The translations under genes were made by a program, and so were the position numbers. Shown here in pieces: positions 1,207 to 11,309 of a DNA stretch of 64,000 nt (positions are counted from its first letter, which is position 1; the number at the start of each line of letters is the position of its first letter). The notes under the pieces were generated by a model. It was given only the letters and a program-made list of their open reading frames with translations. It did not search any database and had not been told where the DNA came from. Where the stretch lies: the IMG/VR virus record IMGVR_UViG_3300032236_001859, positions 62,001 through 126,000 of that record, one strand, 5' to 3'.

Positions 1207-1341
1207 CTAACCCCTCCAGATGTGGCCACGGAAGCCAGTAAATGCCCAGCCGATGAATACCACGGCCAGGAAAATAAGGGCTAACTTGATTAGGATCTGT
1301 GCGAGTGCGACGAGCACGAGCACTTTGATGATAGTCGCCAT
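1207..1341 (-). CDS. Small membrane protein (44 aa)
   Basis: AAGGA before ATG 1341; MATIIKVLVLVALAQILIKLALIFLAVVFIGWAFTG is almost entirely hydrophobic. Confidence 0.6.
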   Translation of the reverse strand: MATIIKVLVLVALAQILIKLALIFLAVVFIGWAFTGFRGHIWRG

Positions 1342-1396
1342 ACGAGGTCCTTGCGGTGCAGGGCACCCAGGAGGTGAGGGCTCTGGCATCACTGCC

Positions 1397-3265
1397 ATGC
1401 CGGATTACCATGAGTCAACCATGGTAGAACTTGCATCCAAGGAAAACGTGAGTCTCGGGGGCGACGCCGCCCTACCGAGTTACAACGATGCCCTCGGACG
1501 TCTTAGCAAGGCAAGGCAAGCCAATCCTAATATGCCCTTGTCGGCTGCCTTGCCTCTGATTTTCAAATTGAAAGGGAAACCATACTCGATAGCGAATACC
1601 CATTTCCTGTTCGAGCACGAGTATGCCACCCACAACATCCCCCGCCGGCAAATCGATAAGGCGGGGCGTCAGCTCTCGAAGTCGACGAACAAGGCCGCTG
1701 GTGGGATCATCCGTGCGGCGAGTCACCCCTATTACAACATGCTCTCGGTGACCCCGCTGTTCGAGCAGATCCGAAAGTTCTCCAACAACTATGTCCGCCC
1801 ATTCCTCAAAGAGTCCATTGTACGTGCACGTCTAATGGATGAGAGCAGGGACCAACAGGTCCTGCAGCGCACTCTCGGTAACGGTAGCAATCTGTTCTAC
1901 AATTACGCAACAAACTCAGCGGATCGTATCCGGGGCACGTCCTGCGATGAGGTCGCTGTGGATGAGCTCCAGGACTTTGACATCGATGTTTTGCCAGTTA
2001 TTCAAAGTTGTTTAGACGCCTCCCCGTATAAACTCGAGAGGTACTCGGGAACCCCAAAAACATTTGACAACCCCATAGAGGTGTACTGGGAGCAGTCGTC
2101 TCAGGGCATCTGGCATATCCCATGTGAGGCCACGGGTTGCAAGCACGTCAATGTGTGCTGTGTCGACGGCGACATCCTGAACATGATTGGGGATAACACG
2201 CAGAGGAAGGATGGGTCCCCTCGCACCCTGATTTGTGCTAAATGCGGGGGTCCCCTGGATTCCAGAGGTGGCTACTTCATACACCGATTCCCAGAGCGAA
2301 GGCTGACCTTCTCGGGCTACCATGAGCCCCAGATCGTCTTCCCCATGCACTACAATTCTCCGTTGTCATGGGACAAGATTCTGGACACCCTGCGGAATAA
2401 ACCCAAGTACATCTTCTACAACGAAGTCCTCGGGGAGAGTTACGACACCGGTCAGAAGTTGATGACCATTAAGGATCTCACTGCGGCCGCAACTGCTAAA
2501 TACGTCAGACCGTCTCAGCTCGATAAGAGCAGATACAATGCAGTAATGCTTGGGGTCGACTGGGGTGGCAAGGGTCGTGAGAAAACCACTGACACCGAGG
2601 ACTTCATCTCAAACACCGCATTGGCTTTAGCTGGTATCAACGTGCACGGAATCGTGGATGTCATGTGGGGATATGCGACCCCATACATCGCGGATCACTT
2701 CCAGGAAGCCAGCATTGTTAAAGAGGCCGCGGCTACTGCAGGCGTCAATTACATATGTCACGATTTCGGGGGTGCGGGAAATATAAGAGAGTCCATATTG
2801 ACCCATATGGGGTGGCCGCTCTCCAAGCTGTGCCCGTTCACTTACATGGCACAACCCAACCAAGATATCATCAATTTCAGTCCGTCTGGTGAAGCAGGCC
2901 CACGGAACTATTGGTCCCTGGATAAGGCGCGTAGCCTCCTCATGCTGTGCGAACTCATCAAGTGCGGAAAGGTGCGCTTCGCCCCCTACGAGGGCCCCAT
3001 GCAGCACCTCATGAACGACTTTCTATCCATCTTCGAGGAAATCAGAGATAACCCGCGTGGGCGTGGGATGAACTTGGTGCACCGGATTCCCAAGCGACAC
3101 GATGACTTCGTGCATGCCGTGAACTATGCGGTCATGGGTCTCTATCATCACACCCAGTTCTGGCCTGACATGGCGCAGTCCTGGCATAAGATGCGAACCA
3201 TGGTGGCCTCTGACGGTACCACGGAATCCACGAATCGTCAGTGGCTCCCCGATGACGTCCTCTGA
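1397..3265 (+). CDS. terL: Terminase large subunit, GpA-like (start 1397 or 1421)
   Basis: Walker A-like KAGRQLSKST, Walker B VAVDELQD, coupling motif SGTPKT, Cys cluster (CEATGC...CAKC), nuclease motifs GVDWGG and HDDFVHA. Confidence 0.9.
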   Translation: MPDYHESTMVELASKENVSLGGDAALPSYNDALGRLSKARQANPNMPLSAALPLIFKLKGKPYSIANTHFLFEHEYATHNIPRRQIDKAGRQLSKSTNKAAGGIIRAASHPYYNMLSVTPLFEQIRKFSNNYVRPFLKESIVRARLMDESRDQQVLQRTLGNGSNLFYNYATNSADRIRGTSCDEVAVDELQDFDIDVLPVIQSCLDASPYKLERYSGTPKTFDNPIEVYWEQSSQGIWHIPCEATGCKHVNVCCVDGDILNMIGDNTQRKDGSPRTLICAKCGGPLDSRGGYFIHRFPERRLTFSGYHEPQIVFPMHYNSPLSWDKILDTLRNKPKYIFYNEVLGESYDTGQKLMTIKDLTAAATAKYVRPSQLDKSRYNAVMLGVDWGGKGREKTTDTEDFISNTALALAGINVHGIVDVMWGYATPYIADHFQEASIVKEAAATAGVNYICHDFGGAGNIRESILTHMGWPLSKLCPFTYMAQPNQDIINFSPSGEAGPRNYWSLDKARSLLMLCELIKCGKVRFAPYEGPMQHLMNDFLSIFEEIRDNPRGRGMNLVHRIPKRHDDFVHAVNYAVMGLYHHTQFWPDMAQSWHKMRTMVASDGTTESTNRQWLPDDVL

Positions 3266-4263: not shown

Positions 4264-4449
4264 TTATGACCCGGGCTGTGCCGGGGCGGGCTCCAGCCCT
4301 GGTTTCGGCGCGGTTCGCCGGAGTTGCCATTTCGAGGCTTCACCTCGAGACATCTGGGTCCCATTGGGACCCTTCACGGCAACCCACTCGTATCCAGGTG
4401 GGTTGTTCGTGGGGGGATACTTCGACCACTGGACATTTCGTTGAATCAT
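4264..4449 (-). CDS. Microprotein with NPPGYEWV motif (61 aa)
   Basis: ATGA overlap with the upstream gene; a paralog lies at 6910-7023. Confidence 0.7.
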   Translation of the reverse strand: MIQRNVQWSKYPPTNNPPGYEWVAVKGPNGTQMSRGEASKWQLRRTAPKPGLEPAPAQPGS

Positions 4450-5249
4450 ACTGCCTCCGCTTCAACTCCCTGAGTGGAAAAAATCCGGAGAGCGTCGATG
4501 ACGCCAACCGGTGCGCGTCCCGTATTCAATGCTGCACGAATACGGGGCATGATTACTGCAATGAAGTCTTCCCTGGCGAGACCCAGTTTGGGGCGCGCCC
4601 CGAGGGCATCAGCCATCCGACGGAGCTCGAGGAGACGCATGGTCCCCAGGGCTTCTGGAGTCGCCACGTTCTCAAGAAGAGCACAGGCTTCTTCCTCACG
4701 GATCTCCTCCTCGGTCTTCGGGAGATCCGCGATATCCACGTATCCACGTGGCTGCGCCTTGGAGACCAAGGCGGCCCCAATGGCAGGTGCCCAGACGCGA
4801 TCTTCAGATCTCCGCTGGATGCGGAGACGGCGAGTTGCCATCTCGATACGCGGCGACGACCACAAGGCGACGAACTGATTCCCCGCGGGATCATTTTGAT
4901 CCTTGGCGAAGGCCTTGCCGGCTTCCAGAGTTCGTACGCGTTCGCCGACCAGGGTTTCCTTGCCGTCGACATCGGTTTCGGAGACCTGGTAGCCAAGATC
5001 GATGCCATCAGCATAGACCTTGTAGACCGTCAACTTGCCGAGGTGCGAGAGCTGCACCTTACCGGATTCCACGGGACGTGAGACGATGTGCTTGGCCCCG
5101 GAAGCCCGGAGCAGCATATCACTGCAGACCTGGATCTGGGGCTTACTGGACTTCATCCCCTTCTTCATGGTTTCCGCGGCAAGGCTGCGGAGGGCTGTGA
5201 CATCGTCACGGCGTGGGCAAATTGCATTTGAGTATATTAGTTTTTCCAC
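4446..5249 (-). CDS. Hypothetical protein with C-terminal Rho_N/HeH-like motif
   Basis: GTG start after AAAGGAG; LGTMRLLELRRMADALG...LAREDFIAVI matches the Rho N-terminal domain pattern. Confidence 0.75.
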   Translation of the reverse strand: MEKLIYSNAICPRRDDVTALRSLAAETMKKGMKSSKPQIQVCSDMLLRASGAKHIVSRPVESGKVQLSHLGKLTVYKVYADGIDLGYQVSETDVDGKETLVGERVRTLEAGKAFAKDQNDPAGNQFVALWSSPRIEMATRRLRIQRRSEDRVWAPAIGAALVSKAQPRGYVDIADLPKTEEEIREEEACALLENVATPEALGTMRLLELRRMADALGARPKLGLAREDFIAVIMPRIRAALNTGRAPVGVIDALRIFSTQGVEAEAV

Positions 5250-5256
5250 GGTAGAC

Positions 5257-5284
5257 TCCTTTGTGCGCACGAAGCGCATTGAGG
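5257..5284 (-). promoter_or_regulatory. 28-nt leader element, copy 1 (hairpin next to the SD)
   Basis: CCTCAATGCGCTTCGTGCGCACAAAGGA, 27/28 identical to 5927-5954. Confidence 0.75.
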
Positions 5285-5323: not shown

Positions 5324-5548
5324 TTATATTTCCCGGACGTCGCCACCAAAACAGGTGACGAGGCCACCCACGGCGATGCCACCACCAATGGCAACCATCG
5401 CAATAGGAATGAATGCGCCTTCATCGGGACAGATCCCGACCACAGCACATGTAATGATGGCAACCACGAATGACACCCCTGCCATGACGGCGCAGTTGCA
5501 CCCCATGGTTTTCAGGGCTTCCAGTGTTGTGACGTCTTCCTCGCTCAT
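5324..5548 (-). CDS. Small protein with two TM helices (74 aa)
   Basis: Two hydrophobic segments; ATGA overlap with the upstream gene. Confidence 0.7.
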   Translation of the reverse strand: MSEEDVTTLEALKTMGCNCAVMAGVSFVVAIITCAVVGICPDEGAFIPIAMVAIGGGIAVGGLVTCFGGDVREI

Positions 5549-5919
5549 GGGAGAACACCACGGTTATGGCGTACCACAGCGAGATAAAGACGGGCAGCAT
5601 GGGTGGCTGCTTTGGTGGCCTGCGAAATCATGGCCTTGCGACCACGGACCCAGGCGGCACCACGGGGGTTATACGCTGGGGTGCCCTGCTTGCGGCGCAG
5701 GGAAGTCTCGGCGCCACGGACAACCCCATTGGCAAACGTCAACCTGGATTCCCAGTGGGGCATCCCTTTGCACTGGGGCTTCAACCCCACGGCGCGTTCG
5801 CAGCGCGCCACGGCTTCTTCAACGAGACCAAGGGCTTCACGGAACGCGATCTCGGGGTGTGCTCCGGGGAGCACTTCAACTAAGGATTCATGAGCGGATA
5901 GCAGGGCTTCAATCGACAT
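5545..5919 (-). CDS. Hypothetical protein (124 aa)
   Basis: ATG 5919 follows AAAGGA of the leader element. Confidence 0.75.
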   Translation of the reverse strand: MSIEALLSAHESLVEVLPGAHPEIAFREALGLVEEAVARCERAVGLKPQCKGMPHWESRLTFANGVVRGAETSLRRKQGTPAYNPRGAAWVRGRKAMISQATKAATHAARLYLAVVRHNRGVLP

Positions 5920-5926
5920 GGTGTTT

Positions 5927-5954
5927 TCCTTTGTGCGCACGTAGCGCATTGAGG
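5927..5954 (-). promoter_or_regulatory. 28-nt leader element, copy 2
   Basis: CCTCAATGCGCTACGTGCGCACAAAGGA. Confidence 0.75.
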
Positions 5955-6091
5955 GTTAGCAGGGGTCGACCACAACGGCGTGGTAGATTCCCAGAAGACT
6001 CAGGGGGACCACCCCTGATTCCCGGACTTGAGACCGGGTCCACTTTCGTGGAGGCCTTACAACTCAGGGGTGGGCGTTGAGTTGCTCTCGG

Positions 6092-6349
6092 CTAAAATCT
6101 ACGCTCTACAGTCAGCATCTCCTCGATCCCAGTGGGCCCCATGGCTTCCTCAGGCATGTCCTCGAGGATCTGGAATTGCTCCCTCACTGACAGCTTTCGC
6201 CAGAGATGGCGCAGCATGTGGTGTTGGGCATGCCCAGCTGACCACTTGCGGTCATCGGGATTCCTCTGGTAGTTCCTGTCAAACTCTTTCCAGCCTGTTA
6301 CGAAGGCCTGGGCCATCCCGCTTAGGGCTGGCGGTGTTGCTGTTTCCAC
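6092..6349 (-). CDS. Hypothetical protein (85 aa)
   Basis: GTG start after AAAGGAGAG; this is the 3' part of the 191-aa ORF, downstream of a terminator. Confidence 0.7.
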   Translation of the reverse strand: METATPPALSGMAQAFVTGWKEFDRNYQRNPDDRKWSAGHAQHHMLRHLWRKLSVREQFQILEDMPEEAMGPTGIEEMLTVERRF

Positions 6350-6410
6350 TTTACTCTCCTTTGCCCCATGGGGGCGTGATACCGGGATCCGCCGGCGCGG
6401 TTTATCAACT

Positions 6411-6446
6411 AAAAAGAAAACCCCGGGGACCACGTGGTCCCCGGGG
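6411..6446 (-). terminator. Intrinsic terminator; perfect 26-bp palindrome
   Basis: CCCCGGGGACCACGTGGTCCCCGGGG followed on minus by TTTTCTTTTT. Confidence 0.8.
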
Positions 6447-6515
6447 GCTTGGAGTCCTGGTTTCCCAGGGGCGAGCATGACACGTCTCCTTATTCCATTT
6501 CGCTGGTGTGACAGC

Positions 6516-6698
6516 CTAGGCTGCCACGGCAGGTTCGAGCTGGGCACGGAGCTCTGAGATCTCCTCTGAGATCTCAAAGGTGTCGAGGCCACGGTCGCTG
6601 CGGCGATCGTATTCGGCCTCGAGTTCAGTGATCCGCATGCCGATATCACGTCGGCGGAGGATGTCATCGACTTCTTCGCAGTTGTTTCTATATGACAT
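6516..6698 (-). CDS. Small charged coiled-coil protein (60 aa)
   Basis: SD AAGGAG; E/R-rich heptad pattern. Confidence 0.75.
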   Translation of the reverse strand: MSYRNNCEEVDDILRRRDIGMRITELEAEYDRRSDRGLDTFEISEEISELRAQLEPAVAA

Positions 6699-6753
6699 GA
6701 TTATTCTCCTTCTGAGTGTGGTGACTTCCTTTTGCCAGACAATGAGTCATAGC

Positions 6754-6827
6754 AAAAAAAGAAGTCACGCCCACTCAACTATGACCACCCCTTTCGGGGG
6801 TAGCCATAGTTGAGTGGGCGTGACTTC
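6754..6827 (-). terminator. Very long hairpin terminator
   Basis: Perfect 23-bp arms (6761-6783 and 6805-6827), inner stem with GAAA loop on minus, then T7. Confidence 0.8.
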
Positions 6828-6909
6828 AGATAGAAAGCCAAGTCTTGCGACTTAGAAATCTTTTATGGATTATCTTTAACGTCCCTCCAAGGGGGACAAG
6901 ACGACGACA

Positions 6910-7023
6910 TCAAAGTGGTTTGAGTTTCCACACCTTGCTGCCGTCGTCATTCTTCCTAACCTCTACCCAGTGATACCCGGGTGGGTTGGCGGGAGCAGTG
7001 CTCCCAATGTGGGTGCGCTTCAT
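6910..7023 (-). CDS. Microprotein with NPPGYHWV motif (37 aa; not in the ORF track)
   Basis: MKRTHIGSTAPANPPGYHWVEVRKNDDGSKVWKLKPL*, GAGAGGG upstream; similar to 4264-4449. Confidence 0.65.
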   Translation of the reverse strand: MKRTHIGSTAPANPPGYHWVEVRKNDDGSKVWKLKPL

Positions 7024-7264
7024 GGCGTACCCTCTCTGCCGCTTTAGGCCCGGCCGGCCAATGCGCTCATTGTTTTACACCTGGGGTGGCGCGGTACCAC
7101 GTCTTAGTGGCTCCGGGTTGGATACCAGATTCCCCTGACAACGACATCGTGAACTCGGAGGCGCCGGCACAGCGCGCTTCTCACCTACACCAAGGGGATG
7201 TCGACCCCTGGTTTGTGACCCCCTACCATCATTGGGGGTAGCTTATTTTGTGATGGTGGTGTGC

Positions 7265-7690
7265 TCAGAGGTGGCTCACCCAGGGGGCGATGTCCTCCTC
7301 CTCCTTGAATACGGGGAGGGCGCCGGTGCCCACCCATTTCAGGTGGATGAAGGTGGGCTTCCCACCTTCCGGGGAACGCATGGCATTCCATGCTTCCATC
7401 ATTTCCAGGCCTCGGTGACAATAGTCACCGGCACTGACCGCGGTGGTGGACCGCCTGTCAGCTATTGAGCGGAGTGCCGGGGGGAACACCCCGAACACAT
7501 AATCCGCTTTCAGCTCTCGTGCCGCCGCGGAGAGCAGGGCCAAGGTGGCCCTCACGTCTTCCTTGTTTTCGAGAGCCTTTTCAGCCCCCAGCCCCATGGG
7601 CTGGCACAGCTTGAGGCCCATGGCTTCAATCTGTGCCAGCTGATCCTGCGTTGGATTGTGACGTGAAAACCAGATAGCGTTGCTGTTCAT
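7265..7690 (-). CDS. Csx20/Csx15-like (CARF-related) protein, candidate ring nuclease
   Basis: WFSRHNPTQDQ, ADYVFG and EGGKPTFIHLKW; SD AAAGGGA. The gene itself is solid; the family call is tentative. Confidence 0.55.
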   Translation of the reverse strand: MNSNAIWFSRHNPTQDQLAQIEAMGLKLCQPMGLGAEKALENKEDVRATLALLSAAARELKADYVFGVFPPALRSIADRRSTTAVSAGDYCHRGLEMMEAWNAMRSPEGGKPTFIHLKWVGTGALPVFKEEEDIAPWVSHL

Positions 7691-7798
7691 ATAATCCCTT
7701 TCAGGTGAGGCCGATTCAGTCGGCGACGTCCTCTGCGTTTATAGGGGCTTGGAACCCTCGATCTGACATCAGACAGATCGGCCGCATTACGTCATACC

Positions 7799-7843
7799 AA
7801 AAAAAAACCGTGGGAGTCGCTGGCGTACCAGCGACTCCCACGG
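7799..7843 (-). terminator. Intrinsic terminator
   Basis: Perfect 16-bp stem with UACG loop on minus, followed by T9. Confidence 0.85.
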
Positions 7844-8592
7844 CTGAAAATTCATCAGGGTTGTTTCGGAGGCGCCATTCTCCCCCTCACCTGACTGGCT
7901 TTTTTGCATGGGAGCCGACCCACGTGTTGGTACCTCCTCTGGTCTTCGAGGGGGCCGTCATTTCCGTGACGTACACCAACAACCCTACCAACTGGGTTGT
8001 CAGCGTTGAGGGGGATCTGGACCCTCACCAGGCTACAGGCGCCGGCGCTATGCCGCGATTCCGACGAACCCGCTGTAGCGCGGTTTTCGCCGACTGACGG
8101 ATACGGGTGTACCGCTGCCGTCAGGACAGCCCAGATATTACTATCTGGGTTGACCTCCCCCGCTACGGAGAGGCGTATCATGAGTGCCCTTGTGGACATC
8201 CCGGATGGGCTCCGGTATCCCAGGAGCTTCCCGCCCTGGGCAAGTGTGTGGCTGTTATCACCACACACTATCCTTAACTAATGTTAAGGCAGTCAAACGT
8301 GGTGGTCCAGCAGTGTCCTACTGCCTGGGGGAATAGCGCCCCGTGACCACGTTTTTAGGCTTTTCCCTTTGAGGGGACCCAGCCATGACTGTTGGGGTAT
8401 CACCGCCTCTTTCCCTTTAAGGGGACCTGGCCGTGACCGTGGGAGGTCTCACCCTTTCCCTGCTGGGCATCACCCAAGCAGGTGGGACAACCCACATGTA
8501 AGACAACCCTCGCACAATAAAGTGCAAGGGTTGTCTTGGTGGGTGATGGAGATGTCGGTCTGGGGTGAGCCAGAACTACTTAGGTCCATCAC
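7844..8592 (-). ncRNA. Candidate large structured non-coding RNA (~750 nt)
   Basis: Near-continuous hairpins between an AT-rich promoter-like site (~8593-8612) and the 7799-7843 terminator; only weak ORFs are present. Confidence 0.4.
8362..8460. repeat. Degenerate tandem repeat, 45-48-bp unit (two copies plus a start)
   Basis: TTTCCCTTT(G/A)AGGGGACC..GCC(A/G)TGAC at 8362 and 8410; TTTCCC again at 8455. Confidence 0.7.
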
Positions 8593-8622
8593 TATAATAT
8601 ACGACAAAACGGGGTTTTATTT
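8590..8622 (-). promoter_or_regulatory. Putative promoter for the leftward early region
   Basis: AT-rich minus-strand sequence AAATAAAACCCCGTTTTGTCGTATATTATAGT containing -10-like hexamers. Confidence 0.45.
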
Positions 8623-8625
8623 AGC

Positions 8626-8833
8626 TAACCCCCCGGCAGGGGTTGGTTTACGCTTACAAGCCTTATTTTGGGTCCCATAAGGATCCCGACGTTAATCTAC
8701 CTGGATTAACGATACCCGTGATACCCCGGGATCCACCCGGGGGGGATCCCCCATCCTTATGGGATAAGATTTTTTGTCCCATAAGGAGTGTTCACCTGGA
8801 TAGGTTAATACCCCCCCCCTCGGCAGGGGTATT
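8626..8833. repeat. Cluster of direct and inverted repeats (origin- or operator-like)
   Basis: TCCCATAAGGA at 8673 (+), 8754 (-) and 8777 (+); CCCC..CGGCAGGGGT hairpins at both ends; three GGATCC. Confidence 0.6.
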
Positions 8834-11309
8834 AAGTGGTTTCAATGAATATCGAGGAATAGATATTCAGGGTGCGTTCCTCGATACCCCATTCCGTGGG
8901 GGTATTCTTGACCAGGAGGTTGGCCCTGACCAATAGGCGCTCAATAAACGCCATTTCCAGCCTGGGTAGCCCAGGGGTCATAAACAGCCTGGAAACCTCG
9001 GTGCGGTTAAATATGACGACGCCTTCTTTGGTTTCGACGTGGAGCCCGCCGGCTTCAACCCCGCTCCAGAGGTGGGCGAGGACAAGACCACCTGAGTTAT
9101 CTGGGGTCGCGAATACCCTGCCGAGATCGGAACCCGCTTGGAGCACCGCGGTGGGGTCCACTTTCCGGGCACGCAAGGCATTGGCGAGATCCCCGGCGAC
9201 CCTGCTGTAGAACCCAACTGGGTTGGTGTCAAACCCTGACTTCGATTTCGTGAGGAGATCGGGGAGGAGTAGGAATATCGTGTTCAGGTTCTCGACGCAG
9301 GGGACATCATAGATATCCAGGCATGCCCATCCCGGGTGTAACCGGAGCAGCTTGTGCTGGAGGCGATCCGCGGAGACCAAGATGTTCTTGGGACCATGGG
9401 GCTTCAAGGCGGCTTCCATGACTTCCTGGGAACTCCAGGTCACCGGCATCACCAGGGGGTTCTCGGCGTGTCTGGCCAGGGCGCCGGCGTCGGGATCGGT
9501 GACCACTGGGATCCCGAGGATCCCGGCAACCTTCTCGACGACGTGCTGGGCACTGTGGACCACGATCCCGGTGCCCCCGAGACCCTCACGGGTCCGCATC
9601 AGGTTACCGGTGAGGACAACTGCCATCGTGGCGAACTCGACGTAATCCCAGGCCGCCCATTGCCGGGATCCCAAGTTGACTGGGGCCTGGATCTGGGGTC
9701 CGCTGAGCCGGGATTCCGTCATGACTACCCCAGAGGGCAGCACGGAGAAGTGGGGCATACAGAGCACCCCGGAATCCCGCTGCCACCCATAGGTCGCCGC
9801 CAATGTGGATCTCGTCGGGGCATTGAATGCAGCTGCGATTCTGAGGAGCTCACGTGCCCATGCCGGCTTCATAAATGGGATATCGTTGCCACTCCTGAGC
9901 AGGATGAAGTCCTCGATCCATTTCGCCGGGTTCTTCCGGAGGGCATCGTAGTCGGCGTCGAGATTCCAGGTCTTCCCTTTGAAGGTCAGGGTGCCCGAGG
10001 CCACGTGGGTTTTCTTCACGGGATCCGTGGTGATCTCCTTGATAACCAGGATCACTGATGAGATCAGGGAGTTGCCGTGATACCAGCCATCGCTGCGTTC
10101 CGTGATAATCTTGCCGTCGATGTCCACGGAACGCGGGGCATCATCGGTAACAAAGAGTGCTTTGAGATCCCGGAGATCAGCGCCCTCAAAGTAGGTCAGG
10201 ATCTGGTTGCGGTGCGCCAGGGGTATCGAGTATGCAGCCACCATCTTCTGGGCCATCTTGATGTCCTGGGCGAGGAGGAGTCTCCCCATGGCCTCATGTG
10301 GCGGCAGCGATGCCCGGATCATGGAGTTCACAATACCTGAGGAGGTCAGCCCGGAGCGACCAAAGCCTTCGTAGAAATCGAAGATGATATGGGCATCCCT
10401 GGCATCCGGGGAATACCATAGACACCCTGCACCTAGAACCCCGAGTGCACCATGGAAGACCTCGGCGCGTTCGGCGAGGAGGCTGGGTACAAAGACGGGC
10501 TGGGTACCCGTGAGGTGGAACAGCGAGGGGGTCTCCGTGGCGACCACGAATGGGGCCTTGATACCACCATCGGCCCACTGCCGCATATTGAACCGAAAGG
10601 CCACCGAGGGATCCCTGACCACGAATGAGGTGTCATGATCATCGCCGACGAGGTTGGCGTACCCCATGGCCTTACCGGGATGGAGACTGAGGTAGGTCCA
10701 TGTCGCCAGGGTTTTGTCGGCGAGATTCGCCCTCTTGGGGAGGATCAGCCAGAACCCCACGATCTTCCACTCCGAGTATGCCGGAATCGCGATAGCCGCG
10801 TACTTCCCCCAGGTCTGCATCGCCGATTTCGCTGACTTCGGGATCTCGATGTCGTGATCCTCCAGCATCTGGGAAATCAGGGCGATGTGGTAGTTGGATC
10901 CCGCGCGACCCGCGGGTTCGCTGAACCAGCACCCGTAATCCTCGCAGATCTGTCGGATATTTCCTGGGAAATCTGAGTAGTAACTGCGGCCTGCCTTGAG
11001 GAGCCTACGAAGCCTGGCCTGTTCATCGGCGACGAAGAGGTAGTCGGCGACCTCCTGCCGGGTATCCGGGGTTACGGCTTCCACGATCTCCAGGGATGAG
11101 ATGGCGTCCGCGATGGATAGCTTGCGGACCCCGGCGAAGTAATGGATGGCGTCGCCGACGAACCCACAGTGGCTGCAGGCCAGATAGTGGGGGCCCCGGG
11201 TGGCGAGGCCGAGGTCGGTTTGACACATCAGACATCTCACCGAAGATGCAGCCATACCGACACCATGGGTGCCGAGCTGATCCAGGGTAGCCGTCAAGGA
11301 GATTCGCAT
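8832..11309 (-). CDS. Zn-finger primase/helicase-like replication protein (825 aa)
   Basis: CLMC...HYLACSHCGFVGDAIHYF...LSIADAI matches the CHC2/DnaG zinc finger; central YGWQ region resembles DUF927-type primase-helicases; start uncertain. Confidence 0.6.
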   Translation of the reverse strand: MRISLTATLDQLGTHGVGMAASSVRCLMCQTDLGLATRGPHYLACSHCGFVGDAIHYFAGVRKLSIADAISSLEIVEAVTPDTRQEVADYLFVADEQARLRRLLKAGRSYYSDFPGNIRQICEDYGCWFSEPAGRAGSNYHIALISQMLEDHDIEIPKSAKSAMQTWGKYAAIAIPAYSEWKIVGFWLILPKRANLADKTLATWTYLSLHPGKAMGYANLVGDDHDTSFVVRDPSVAFRFNMRQWADGGIKAPFVVATETPSLFHLTGTQPVFVPSLLAERAEVFHGALGVLGAGCLWYSPDARDAHIIFDFYEGFGRSGLTSSGIVNSMIRASLPPHEAMGRLLLAQDIKMAQKMVAAYSIPLAHRNQILTYFEGADLRDLKALFVTDDAPRSVDIDGKIITERSDGWYHGNSLISSVILVIKEITTDPVKKTHVASGTLTFKGKTWNLDADYDALRKNPAKWIEDFILLRSGNDIPFMKPAWARELLRIAAAFNAPTRSTLAATYGWQRDSGVLCMPHFSVLPSGVVMTESRLSGPQIQAPVNLGSRQWAAWDYVEFATMAVVLTGNLMRTREGLGGTGIVVHSAQHVVEKVAGILGIPVVTDPDAGALARHAENPLVMPVTWSSQEVMEAALKPHGPKNILVSADRLQHKLLRLHPGWACLDIYDVPCVENLNTIFLLLPDLLTKSKSGFDTNPVGFYSRVAGDLANALRARKVDPTAVLQAGSDLGRVFATPDNSGGLVLAHLWSGVEAGGLHVETKEGVVIFNRTEVSRLFMTPGLPRLEMAFIERLLVRANLLVKNTPTEWGIEERTLNIYSSIFIETT

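Follow-up and report, generated by a model that had tools for sequence, protein, structure and literature searches.

Csx16 and Csx20 have been experimentally confirmed as ring nucleases that cleave cyclic tetra-adenylate (cA4), and both possess a five-stranded α/β core (PMC12409355). Csx20 cleaves cyclic tri-adenylate (cA3) in addition, at higher enzyme concentration, and Csx15 exhibited almost no ring-nuclease activity on cA3, cA4 or cyclic hexa-adenylate (cA6), a role as a sponge having been proposed for it (PMC12409355). Csx20 was found in 4 of 28,114 phage genomes and Csx16 in 2 of 28,114 (PMC12409355), and homologues of csx20 occur under the control of Aca14 in operons directed against CRISPR (clustered regularly interspaced short palindromic repeats) immunity (PMC13551039). 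Because phage homologues of Csx20 have been published as candidate anti-CRISPRs, a Csx20-like phage protein in this role is not a new idea. Crn4 is a ring nuclease with a new fold, also found in phages and plasmids, and H47 of AcrIII-1 and H15 and R112 of Crn4 are residues of catalytic type (PMC12830947). The present analysis concerns P0001, a Csx20-like open reading frame (ORF) at positions 7265..7690 of the minus strand in a 64,000 nt stretch of viral DNA (the window, bases 62,001-126,000 of IMG/VR record IMGVR_UViG_3300032236_001859). The new element here is a viral family, large and divergent, that escapes existing models. The favoured reading, held with a probability of about 0.5, is that P0001 would be a homodimeric, metal-independent cA4/cA3 ring nuclease that blunts type III CRISPR signalling, or that of a cA3-dependent cyclic-oligonucleotide-based antiphage signalling system (CBASS). 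As part of this reading the family would form a divergent, previously unrecognised, virus-only branch of the Csx20/Csx16 ring-nuclease group.

The ORF listing and translation give P0001 as 141 amino acids from ATG to stop codon, and a Shine-Dalgarno-like AAGGGA can be read from the sequence on the same strand at 7695..7700, 4 nt 5' of the ATG. The motifs that a first-pass annotation of the window had quoted, WFSRHNPTQDQ (residues 7-17), ADYVFG (62-67) and GLEMMEAWNAMRSPEGGKPTFIHLKW (94-119), are all present in the ORF and do not reflect chance, since they are conserved across approximately 200 clusters of homologues. In an exhaustive HMMER search of 1.84 billion cluster representatives, 199 relatives passed E ≤ 1e-3, of which 65 also passed E ≤ 1e-10; single-domain proteins of 110-150 amino acids made up nearly the whole set. 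Across an alignment of 129 sequences Q17 and G67 never vary, and W7, S9, R10, H11, V68, N102, R105, G109, P112, F114 and H116 are each conserved in at least 90% of members.

P0001 gave no match at E ≤ 10 to NCBIfam, PADLOC or Pfam (in a Pfam set that did not include the PF27247 model) and only noise against PHROGs, while the 129 relatives gave nothing useful against Pfam, PADLOC or NCBIfam. No match to P0001 was obtained in the PDB by sequence or by profile, none in 50,697 GenBank phage records by tblastn with three family members, and no relative in a pattern scan of 185,579 genomes representing one per prokaryotic species. None of 112 relatives is named or carries a precomputed Pfam domain. 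The family was met in viral and metagenomic contigs only: the 17 IMG/VR loci with members were identified as viral contigs, the approximately 25 contigs carrying members all resemble phage DNA, and the neighbours of P0001 in a language-model protein atlas are almost all viral. At the other loci members lie among short hypothetical phage genes. On two independent contigs, a gene for a 119 amino acid NUDIX hydrolase (L121 5381-5740 and L122 3238-3597) overlaps the end of one member, P0013, by 4 nt, and it is possible that this hydrolase is a functional partner of P0013.

AlphaFold2, supplied with the family alignment, predicted the structure of P0001 with a mean local distance difference test score (pLDDT) of 93.8 and a predicted template modelling score (pTM) of 0.87. 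The model has the topology β1 (3-8), α1 (15-23), β2 (26-30), α2 (43-60), β3 (62-67), α3 (71-87), β4 (95-102) and β5 (116-125), a predicted Rossmann-like fold of five strands and three helices. This order of elements (β-α-β-α-β-α-β-β) corresponds to the five-stranded, CARF-like α/β core by which Csx20 is characterised. The conserved positions fall after β1 (S9-R10-H11, T14 and Q17), after β3 (G67-V68-F69-P70), after β4 (W101-N102, R105, G109 and P112) and in β5 (F114-x-H116), all of them at the C-terminal edge of the predicted sheet. This edge of the sheet is the ligand site of Rossmann-like and CARF domains.

A symmetric homodimer of P0001 was predicted with a score of 0.79, against 0.01 for the best control, as for a CARF-type ring nuclease. 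Among proteins solved as one-chain pairs, 20 of 30 attained a score of 0.79; among those solved as single chains, 1 of 23 did. The predicted interface comprises α3, β4 and β5 (residues 70-90, 99-104 and 117-124) and lies beside W101, N102, R105 and H116. On the evidence of the model, P0001 would share the two-fold homodimeric arrangement of the CARF/SAVED superfamily.

Comparison of the model with solved structures using Foldseek returned nothing below 1e-3, with cA4-bound Cam1 at rank 7. Against the Swiss-Prot models the best match was MJ1673 (E 1.6e-3, probability 1.00, template modelling scores 0.49/0.53, residues 1-121 on 1-125), ten-fold ahead of the next match. The structural comparison with Csx20 that had been proposed at the outset returned a Csx20 in first place among the Swiss-Prot models, MJ1673 being one, as set out below. 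The top matches among AFDB clusters were uncharacterised proteins of 111-124 amino acids at E of approximately 1e-5, and further matches included several entries named 'CRISPR-associated protein' and a 'Csx16' fusion, matched in its C-terminal domain. A search based on language-model features returned viral clusters labelled PF27247 'MJ1673'.

Methanococci genomes were found by means of the first 60 residues of Methanocaldococcus jannaschii tyrosyl-tRNA synthetase, and Cas10 was located with TIGR02578. MJ1673 is an ORF of 129 amino acids directly upstream of Cas10, at genome coordinates that fit M. jannaschii. It matches three PADLOC Csx20 models (best E 1.1e-63), and its homologues bear the NCBI name 'CRISPR-associated protein Csx20' and all carry PF27247. 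These matches, names and labels together identify MJ1673 with Csx20 and with PF27247. Alignment of 42 genuine Csx20 sequences gave the consensus LLFSHxLTxxQ ... GDxVLIQGDFG ... PVYSTTKR ... DGK ... FxHxRF. The Csx20 pattern cited in the first-pass annotation (FSHxLTxxQ, GDYVL, VYA..R, DG, FxHxxF) was accurate when set against this consensus. Invariant positions of Csx20, in MJ1673 numbering, are S9, H10, Q16, D19, Q74-G75-D76, R101, F118, H120 and R124.

Profile-profile alignment of the P0001 family with the 42 Csx20 sequences using hhalign gave a score of 26.9 (P 9e-4, probability 22.7%) over 111 collinear columns that extend from end to end. The reversed Csx20 profile scored 11.6, and 40 column shuffles scored 8-18, at most 18.2. 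The alignment paired AiWFSRH.PT..Q of the family with fLLFS-H.LT..Q of Csx20, FGVFP with QGDFG and F.H..W with F.H..F; the register at the Arg after β4 was ambiguous. Cross searches of the P0001 family and Csx20 by hidden Markov model (HMM) against sequence gave at most 13.5 bits, and widening of the Csx20 profile found a match in 0 of 401 Bacillota genomes.

The P0001 family and Csx20 resemble one another in length (approximately 120-140 amino acids), in a five-stranded sheet flanked by helices and in the order of their motifs: β1 followed by F-S-(R)-H-x-x-T-x-x-Q, G-x-F after β3, an Arg after β4 and F-x-H-x-x-aromatic in β5. Both are predicted homodimers and both are found in phages. The family has equivalents of the Ser, His, Thr, Gln, Gly and F-x-H of Csx20 together with one Arg. 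In contrast to Csx20, it has one extra Arg between the Ser and the His, its own invariant W7, N102, G109 and P112 and a β4-β5 link that is approximately 8 residues shorter; Csx20 adjoins type III cas genes, whereas no cas neighbour was seen for the P0001 family. The P0001 family is probably a distant homologue of Csx20, and it is a family separate from Csx20 rather than a member of it. The likeness to Csx20 that was first claimed from motifs is sustained by the fold, by motif placement and by a profile-profile score above all shuffles, but not by the hhalign probability of 23% nor by any match to a Csx20, Csx15 or Csx16 sequence model.

Under the favoured reading of P0001 as a ring nuclease, the dimer would bind cA4, and perhaps cA3, in a pocket that lies on its two-fold axis and is formed from the loops after β1 (Ser9-Arg10-His11, Thr14 and Gln17) and after β4/β5 (Asn102, Arg105 and His116). 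The ring of the cyclic oligoadenylate (cOA) would be cut without metal by in-line attack of a 2'-OH, with the histidines and arginines of P0001 acting as general acid and transition-state stabilisers. By cleaving cOA the dimer would disable the effectors of type III CRISPR, or of cA3-CBASS, in any host that deploys them. Genes beside family members in other phages, a MYG1-type phosphoesterase and the overlapping NUDIX gene, suggest nucleotide substrates and fit this reading. The viral ring nuclease proposed in the first-pass annotation thus has the fold, the dimer and the Csx20 likeness on its side, but no Csx20 model match; the ligand, the catalysis (cleavage of cOA included) and the role against host defence are what we infer, and an anti-CRISPR function is plausible.

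A number of observations weigh against this reading. The hhalign probability lies under the usual acceptance level. Sequence models of Csx20, Csx16, Csx15 and CARF detected neither P0001 nor its 129 relatives, for which no match to a PADLOC Csx20 model was obtained at E ≤ 1, and the PF27247 label is on none of 112 relatives though on every Csx20 protein. A search of 40 Methanococci genomes, MJ1673 included, with the family HMM gave noise only. The residues D19, Q74, D76, K100 and R124, which are invariant in Csx20, are missing from the P0001 family, and the closest homologue of P0001 (P0003) is without R10, H11 and the N102-R105 loop. No family member was met in a CRISPR locus, and gene and Pfam tables for 11 places showed no cas gene beside a member; a viral copy need not, however, lie in a type III CRISPR-cas locus.

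Alternatively, P0001 may be an enzyme of this fold with a different nucleotide or RNA-end substrate, acting with partners such as MYG1-like or NUDIX proteins on, for example, 2',3'-cyclic phosphate or 5'-OH RNA ends or other nucleotide signals. A MYG1_exonuc gene lies directly upstream of that for P0003, and on two contigs the 3' end of another member is overlapped by the NUDIX gene. Searches by fold and by features also return 'metal-dependent hydrolases' of the MYG1 family whose C-terminal approximately 100 residues are P0001-like, and the P0001 gene adjoins ribozymes that generate exactly such RNA ends. Against this, the partner genes are not conserved over the family, the phage encoding P0001 has no MYG1 gene, no ribozyme was found at 14 other family loci, and ring nucleases are the closest characterised proteins in fold, motif and profile. 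An enzyme of this kind is considered unlikely.

It is improbable that P0001 is an unrelated small Rossmann-like protein in which the likeness to Csx20 is convergent and which has no role in defence signalling, given that the structure search, the language-model features and the profile score above shuffles agree and that the same motif order is found on the same secondary-structure elements as in Csx20. A cyclic-nucleotide sponge, a dimer with tight binding but no cleavage of cOA or some other defence signal, would fit the same fold and dimer and has a precedent in the role proposed for Csx15, with its almost absent activity (PMC12409355), but is the least probable alternative, as two His, two Arg, a Ser and an Asn are near-invariant over approximately 200 clusters and look catalytic in the manner of H47 of AcrIII-1 or H15/R112 of Crn4 (PMC12830947), and the high expression that a sponge usually requires has left no sign here.

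Among the other viral ring nucleases, AcrIII-1/Crn2 (DUF1874) and Crn4 share with P0001 the proposed role of degrading cOA on behalf of a virus. They are small homodimers that use His and Arg residues in a two-fold pocket (PMC12830947), and P0001 may be likened to them in this. The folds are different, and P0001 matched neither DUF1874 in Pfam nor any PDB sequence, which agrees with the initial view that it is distinct from AcrIII-1. Crn4 was considered on account of a T-x-H...R signature and was ruled out, having a mostly β fold with a wrapping hairpin where P0001 is α/β; P0001 gave no PDB sequence match. Compared by sequence model only, Csx16 (the VVA1548 family) was matched by a single member of 129 in PADLOC at E 0.044, which represents noise.

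If the P0001 family does cleave cOA, approximately 200 phage protein clusters missed by Cas and anti-defence models would join the counter-defence repertoire, and surveys of phage ring nucleases, in which Csx16 and Csx20 together were found in 6 of 28,114 genomes (PMC12409355), would be large underestimates. The conserved Ser-Arg-His, Asn..Arg and Phe-x-His of the family would also offer a comparison set for what the catalytic core of Csx20 and Csx16 needs.

The closest homologue, P0003, is encoded on a 24 kb contig of a related phage (L117) and is 61% identical to P0001 by phmmer and 55% by tblastn. At 55% amino acid identity the P0001 gene is far more divergent between the two phages than the flanking genes, which exhibit 78-91%. 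Between the conserved 825 amino acid gene that precedes the locus and the Csx20-like gene, L117 has two further genes, encoding a protein of 276 amino acids and a MYG1_exonuc protein of 310 amino acids, both of which are missing from the phage encoding P0001. In two further relatives, detected in DNA sequencing runs, alignment of the flanks holds up to 7256 and resumes at 7706; what stands between in place of the ORF is less than 80% alike, and a 45 nt piece over the EGGKPTF motif is retained in one of the two. Relatives X2 and X7 align over 7000-7256 and stop exactly at 7256. As the flanks of the relatives align to 7256 and from 7706, the variable slot is essentially the ORF and its ribosome-binding site. 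The P0001 gene is a discrete, swappable and fast-evolving cargo, as is typical of counter-defence genes.

The region upstream of this cargo is occupied by RNA elements, all on the minus strand. A strong intrinsic terminator of the upstream RNA, with an 18-pair stem and a T9 tail, is located at 7806..7845; a soil relative has paired changes in the stem (7810 G>A and 7841 C>T). After a further 12 nt follows a type-P1 twister ribozyme at 7725..7793, in the 5' leader 34 nt before the ATG, which was identified as Rfam RF03160 by a scan in E-value mode (63.5 bits over the full model 1-68, E 4.9e-12 over the 64 kb window). A scan at gathering thresholds missed it because 63.5 bits lies 3.7 below the curated cut-off of 67.2. 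The twister core (UAA, GCC, GGU.CCAAGCCC, UAAA and GAGG) is present with all conserved nucleotides, and this is the only significant copy in the 216 kb genome. By homology, the ribozyme would be expected to cut at U^AA, between 7789 and 7788, and thereby to leave a 5'-OH mRNA with the ribozyme body and a 34 nt leader. In the predicted folded leader the Shine-Dalgarno region is largely unpaired.

A promoter belonging to the P0001 gene itself was considered and rejected, there being only 12 nt between terminator and ribozyme. The first-pass description of an 'own early cassette' is consequently retained for a discrete, swappable cassette but not for one with its own promoter, for which no room was found. 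A promoter-like TTGTCG...TATATTATAGT and a hairpin, situated after the 825 amino acid gene, precede the large-RNA element described below. A scan of window positions 6000-9200 for consensus promoters found one site, well upstream at 8296-8267 inside that element, a count not above that expected by chance. Transcription of the cargo probably proceeds by read-through, starting at the promoter that serves the upstream RNA of approximately 750 nt. The twister would then part the two RNAs, so that the large RNA gains a defined 3' end and the cargo mRNA starts with a 5'-OH and a structured, cap-like leader.

At the same junction (approximately window position 7800), L117 carries a different class of ribozyme, a pistol (RF02679) at L117 4802-4863 on the plus strand with 36.5 bits against a cut-off of 34.5. 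In that phage the order is the large RNA, then the pistol in place of terminator and twister, then the MYG1_exonuc gene (L117 4965-5897). One and the same site thus holds a ribozyme of the twister-P1 class in one phage and of the pistol class in its relative. No ribozyme was found near other family members, either in 14 loci scanned in E-value mode or in 13 scanned at gathering thresholds. Because the 14 other loci lack them, the ribozymes belong to the scaffold of this phage lineage and not to the protein family. Weinberg and colleagues reportedly described in 2015 that self-cleaving ribozyme classes tend to cluster, also in phage-like DNA. Here the ribozyme lies between a conserved large RNA and a variable protein-coding cargo, a placement that suggests a role in processing or insulation. 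We know of no description of an exchange of twister and pistol between a large RNA and variable cargo. As a rare natural case, two classes at one junction make the long-open question of ribozyme role testable.

The RNA upstream of the terminator is a candidate large structured RNA of approximately 750 nt, non-coding and conserved in L117, at 7850..8636 on the minus strand. Over approximately 8636-7852 there is no conserved ORF, and the sequence is 84.6% identical at the nucleotide level to the gene-free L117 3948-4755. Substitutions are not 3-periodic (29/30/22), as opposed to 261/98/49 and 60/23/12 in coding controls. RNAalifold applied to the two sequences gave 225 pairs, of which 13 were compensatory and 0 broken; since only two sequences are involved and the structure was derived from them, the pairing is no more than suggestive. 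In two lake metatranscriptomes the sole contigs on window 6400-9400 corresponded to 7861-8011, 7972-8125 and 8352-8535, where carry-over of DNA is possible; the twister site was covered by no RNA reads. Full sequences of this RNA number two only, from the P0001 phage and from L117, and scans of viral and metagenome collections with four exact 20-22-mers found no further copies. The RNA resembles the ornate RNAs GOLLD, ROOL, OLE and HEARO in its size, its location in a phage, its dense conserved helices and its apparent abundance in RNA libraries, but differs from them in having no match to any Rfam family at E ≤ 1. It is a candidate new large phage RNA. A tandem direct repeat of 34 nt (82% identical, spacing 48) lies inside it at window 8362-8443, and in the predicted structure each copy folds into a hairpin of the form CCCC....GGGG.

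A conserved non-coding module at 7031..7256 on the minus strand follows the ORF directly on its downstream side and delimits the variable slot on the left. It is 90% identical at the nucleotide level to L117 6763-6987, with substitutions (6/8/6) that are not periodic. A plus-strand ORF at 6981-7241 with a CxxC...CxxC motif was considered as a convergent gene and ruled out, being interrupted in L117 and having substitutions without periodicity. A second conserved non-coding module downstream of the gene, window 6723-6828, is 88% identical to L117 7229-7335 and includes an inverted repeat with 31 nt arms (94% complementary) at 6761..6827, likewise conserved in L117.

These elements can be read jointly with the protein. 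The conserved non-coding scaffold (the promoter, the ornate RNA of approximately 750 nt, an interchangeable ribozyme that is a twister here and a pistol in the relative, and the 3' non-coding module) would then constitute an expression slot for exchangeable counter-defence cargo, and P0001, lying in that slot, would be the first member of a new, HMM-invisible family of viral ring nucleases that shuts down cOA immunity. Such a combination is tentative, and it is doubtful that it holds in full.

The record from which the window derives is 216,043 bp in length, has direct terminal repeats and is rated complete; the phage, of approximately 216 kb, is a jumbo phage of soil and freshwater. Sequencing runs containing it or its kin were metagenomes of soil, wetland, freshwater, sediment and lakes. 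The window has a G+C content of approximately 57% and encodes the large terminase at 1220-3265. The neighbouring 825 amino acid gene (8832-11309, minus strand) and nearly all nearby ORFs gave no Pfam or PHROG match, and the phage is very poorly represented in current protein families. Very long minus-strand ORFs of 1198-1438 amino acids are found at 43.8-56.8 kb of the window. A direct repeat of 28 nt, 96% identical, occurs at window 5257-5284 and 5927-5954, where it spans the start codons of the minus-strand ORFs 4446-5279 and 5545-5949. The products of both ORFs start with MR(F/Y)VRTKE, and the repeat may represent a duplicated translation-initiation or regulatory region.

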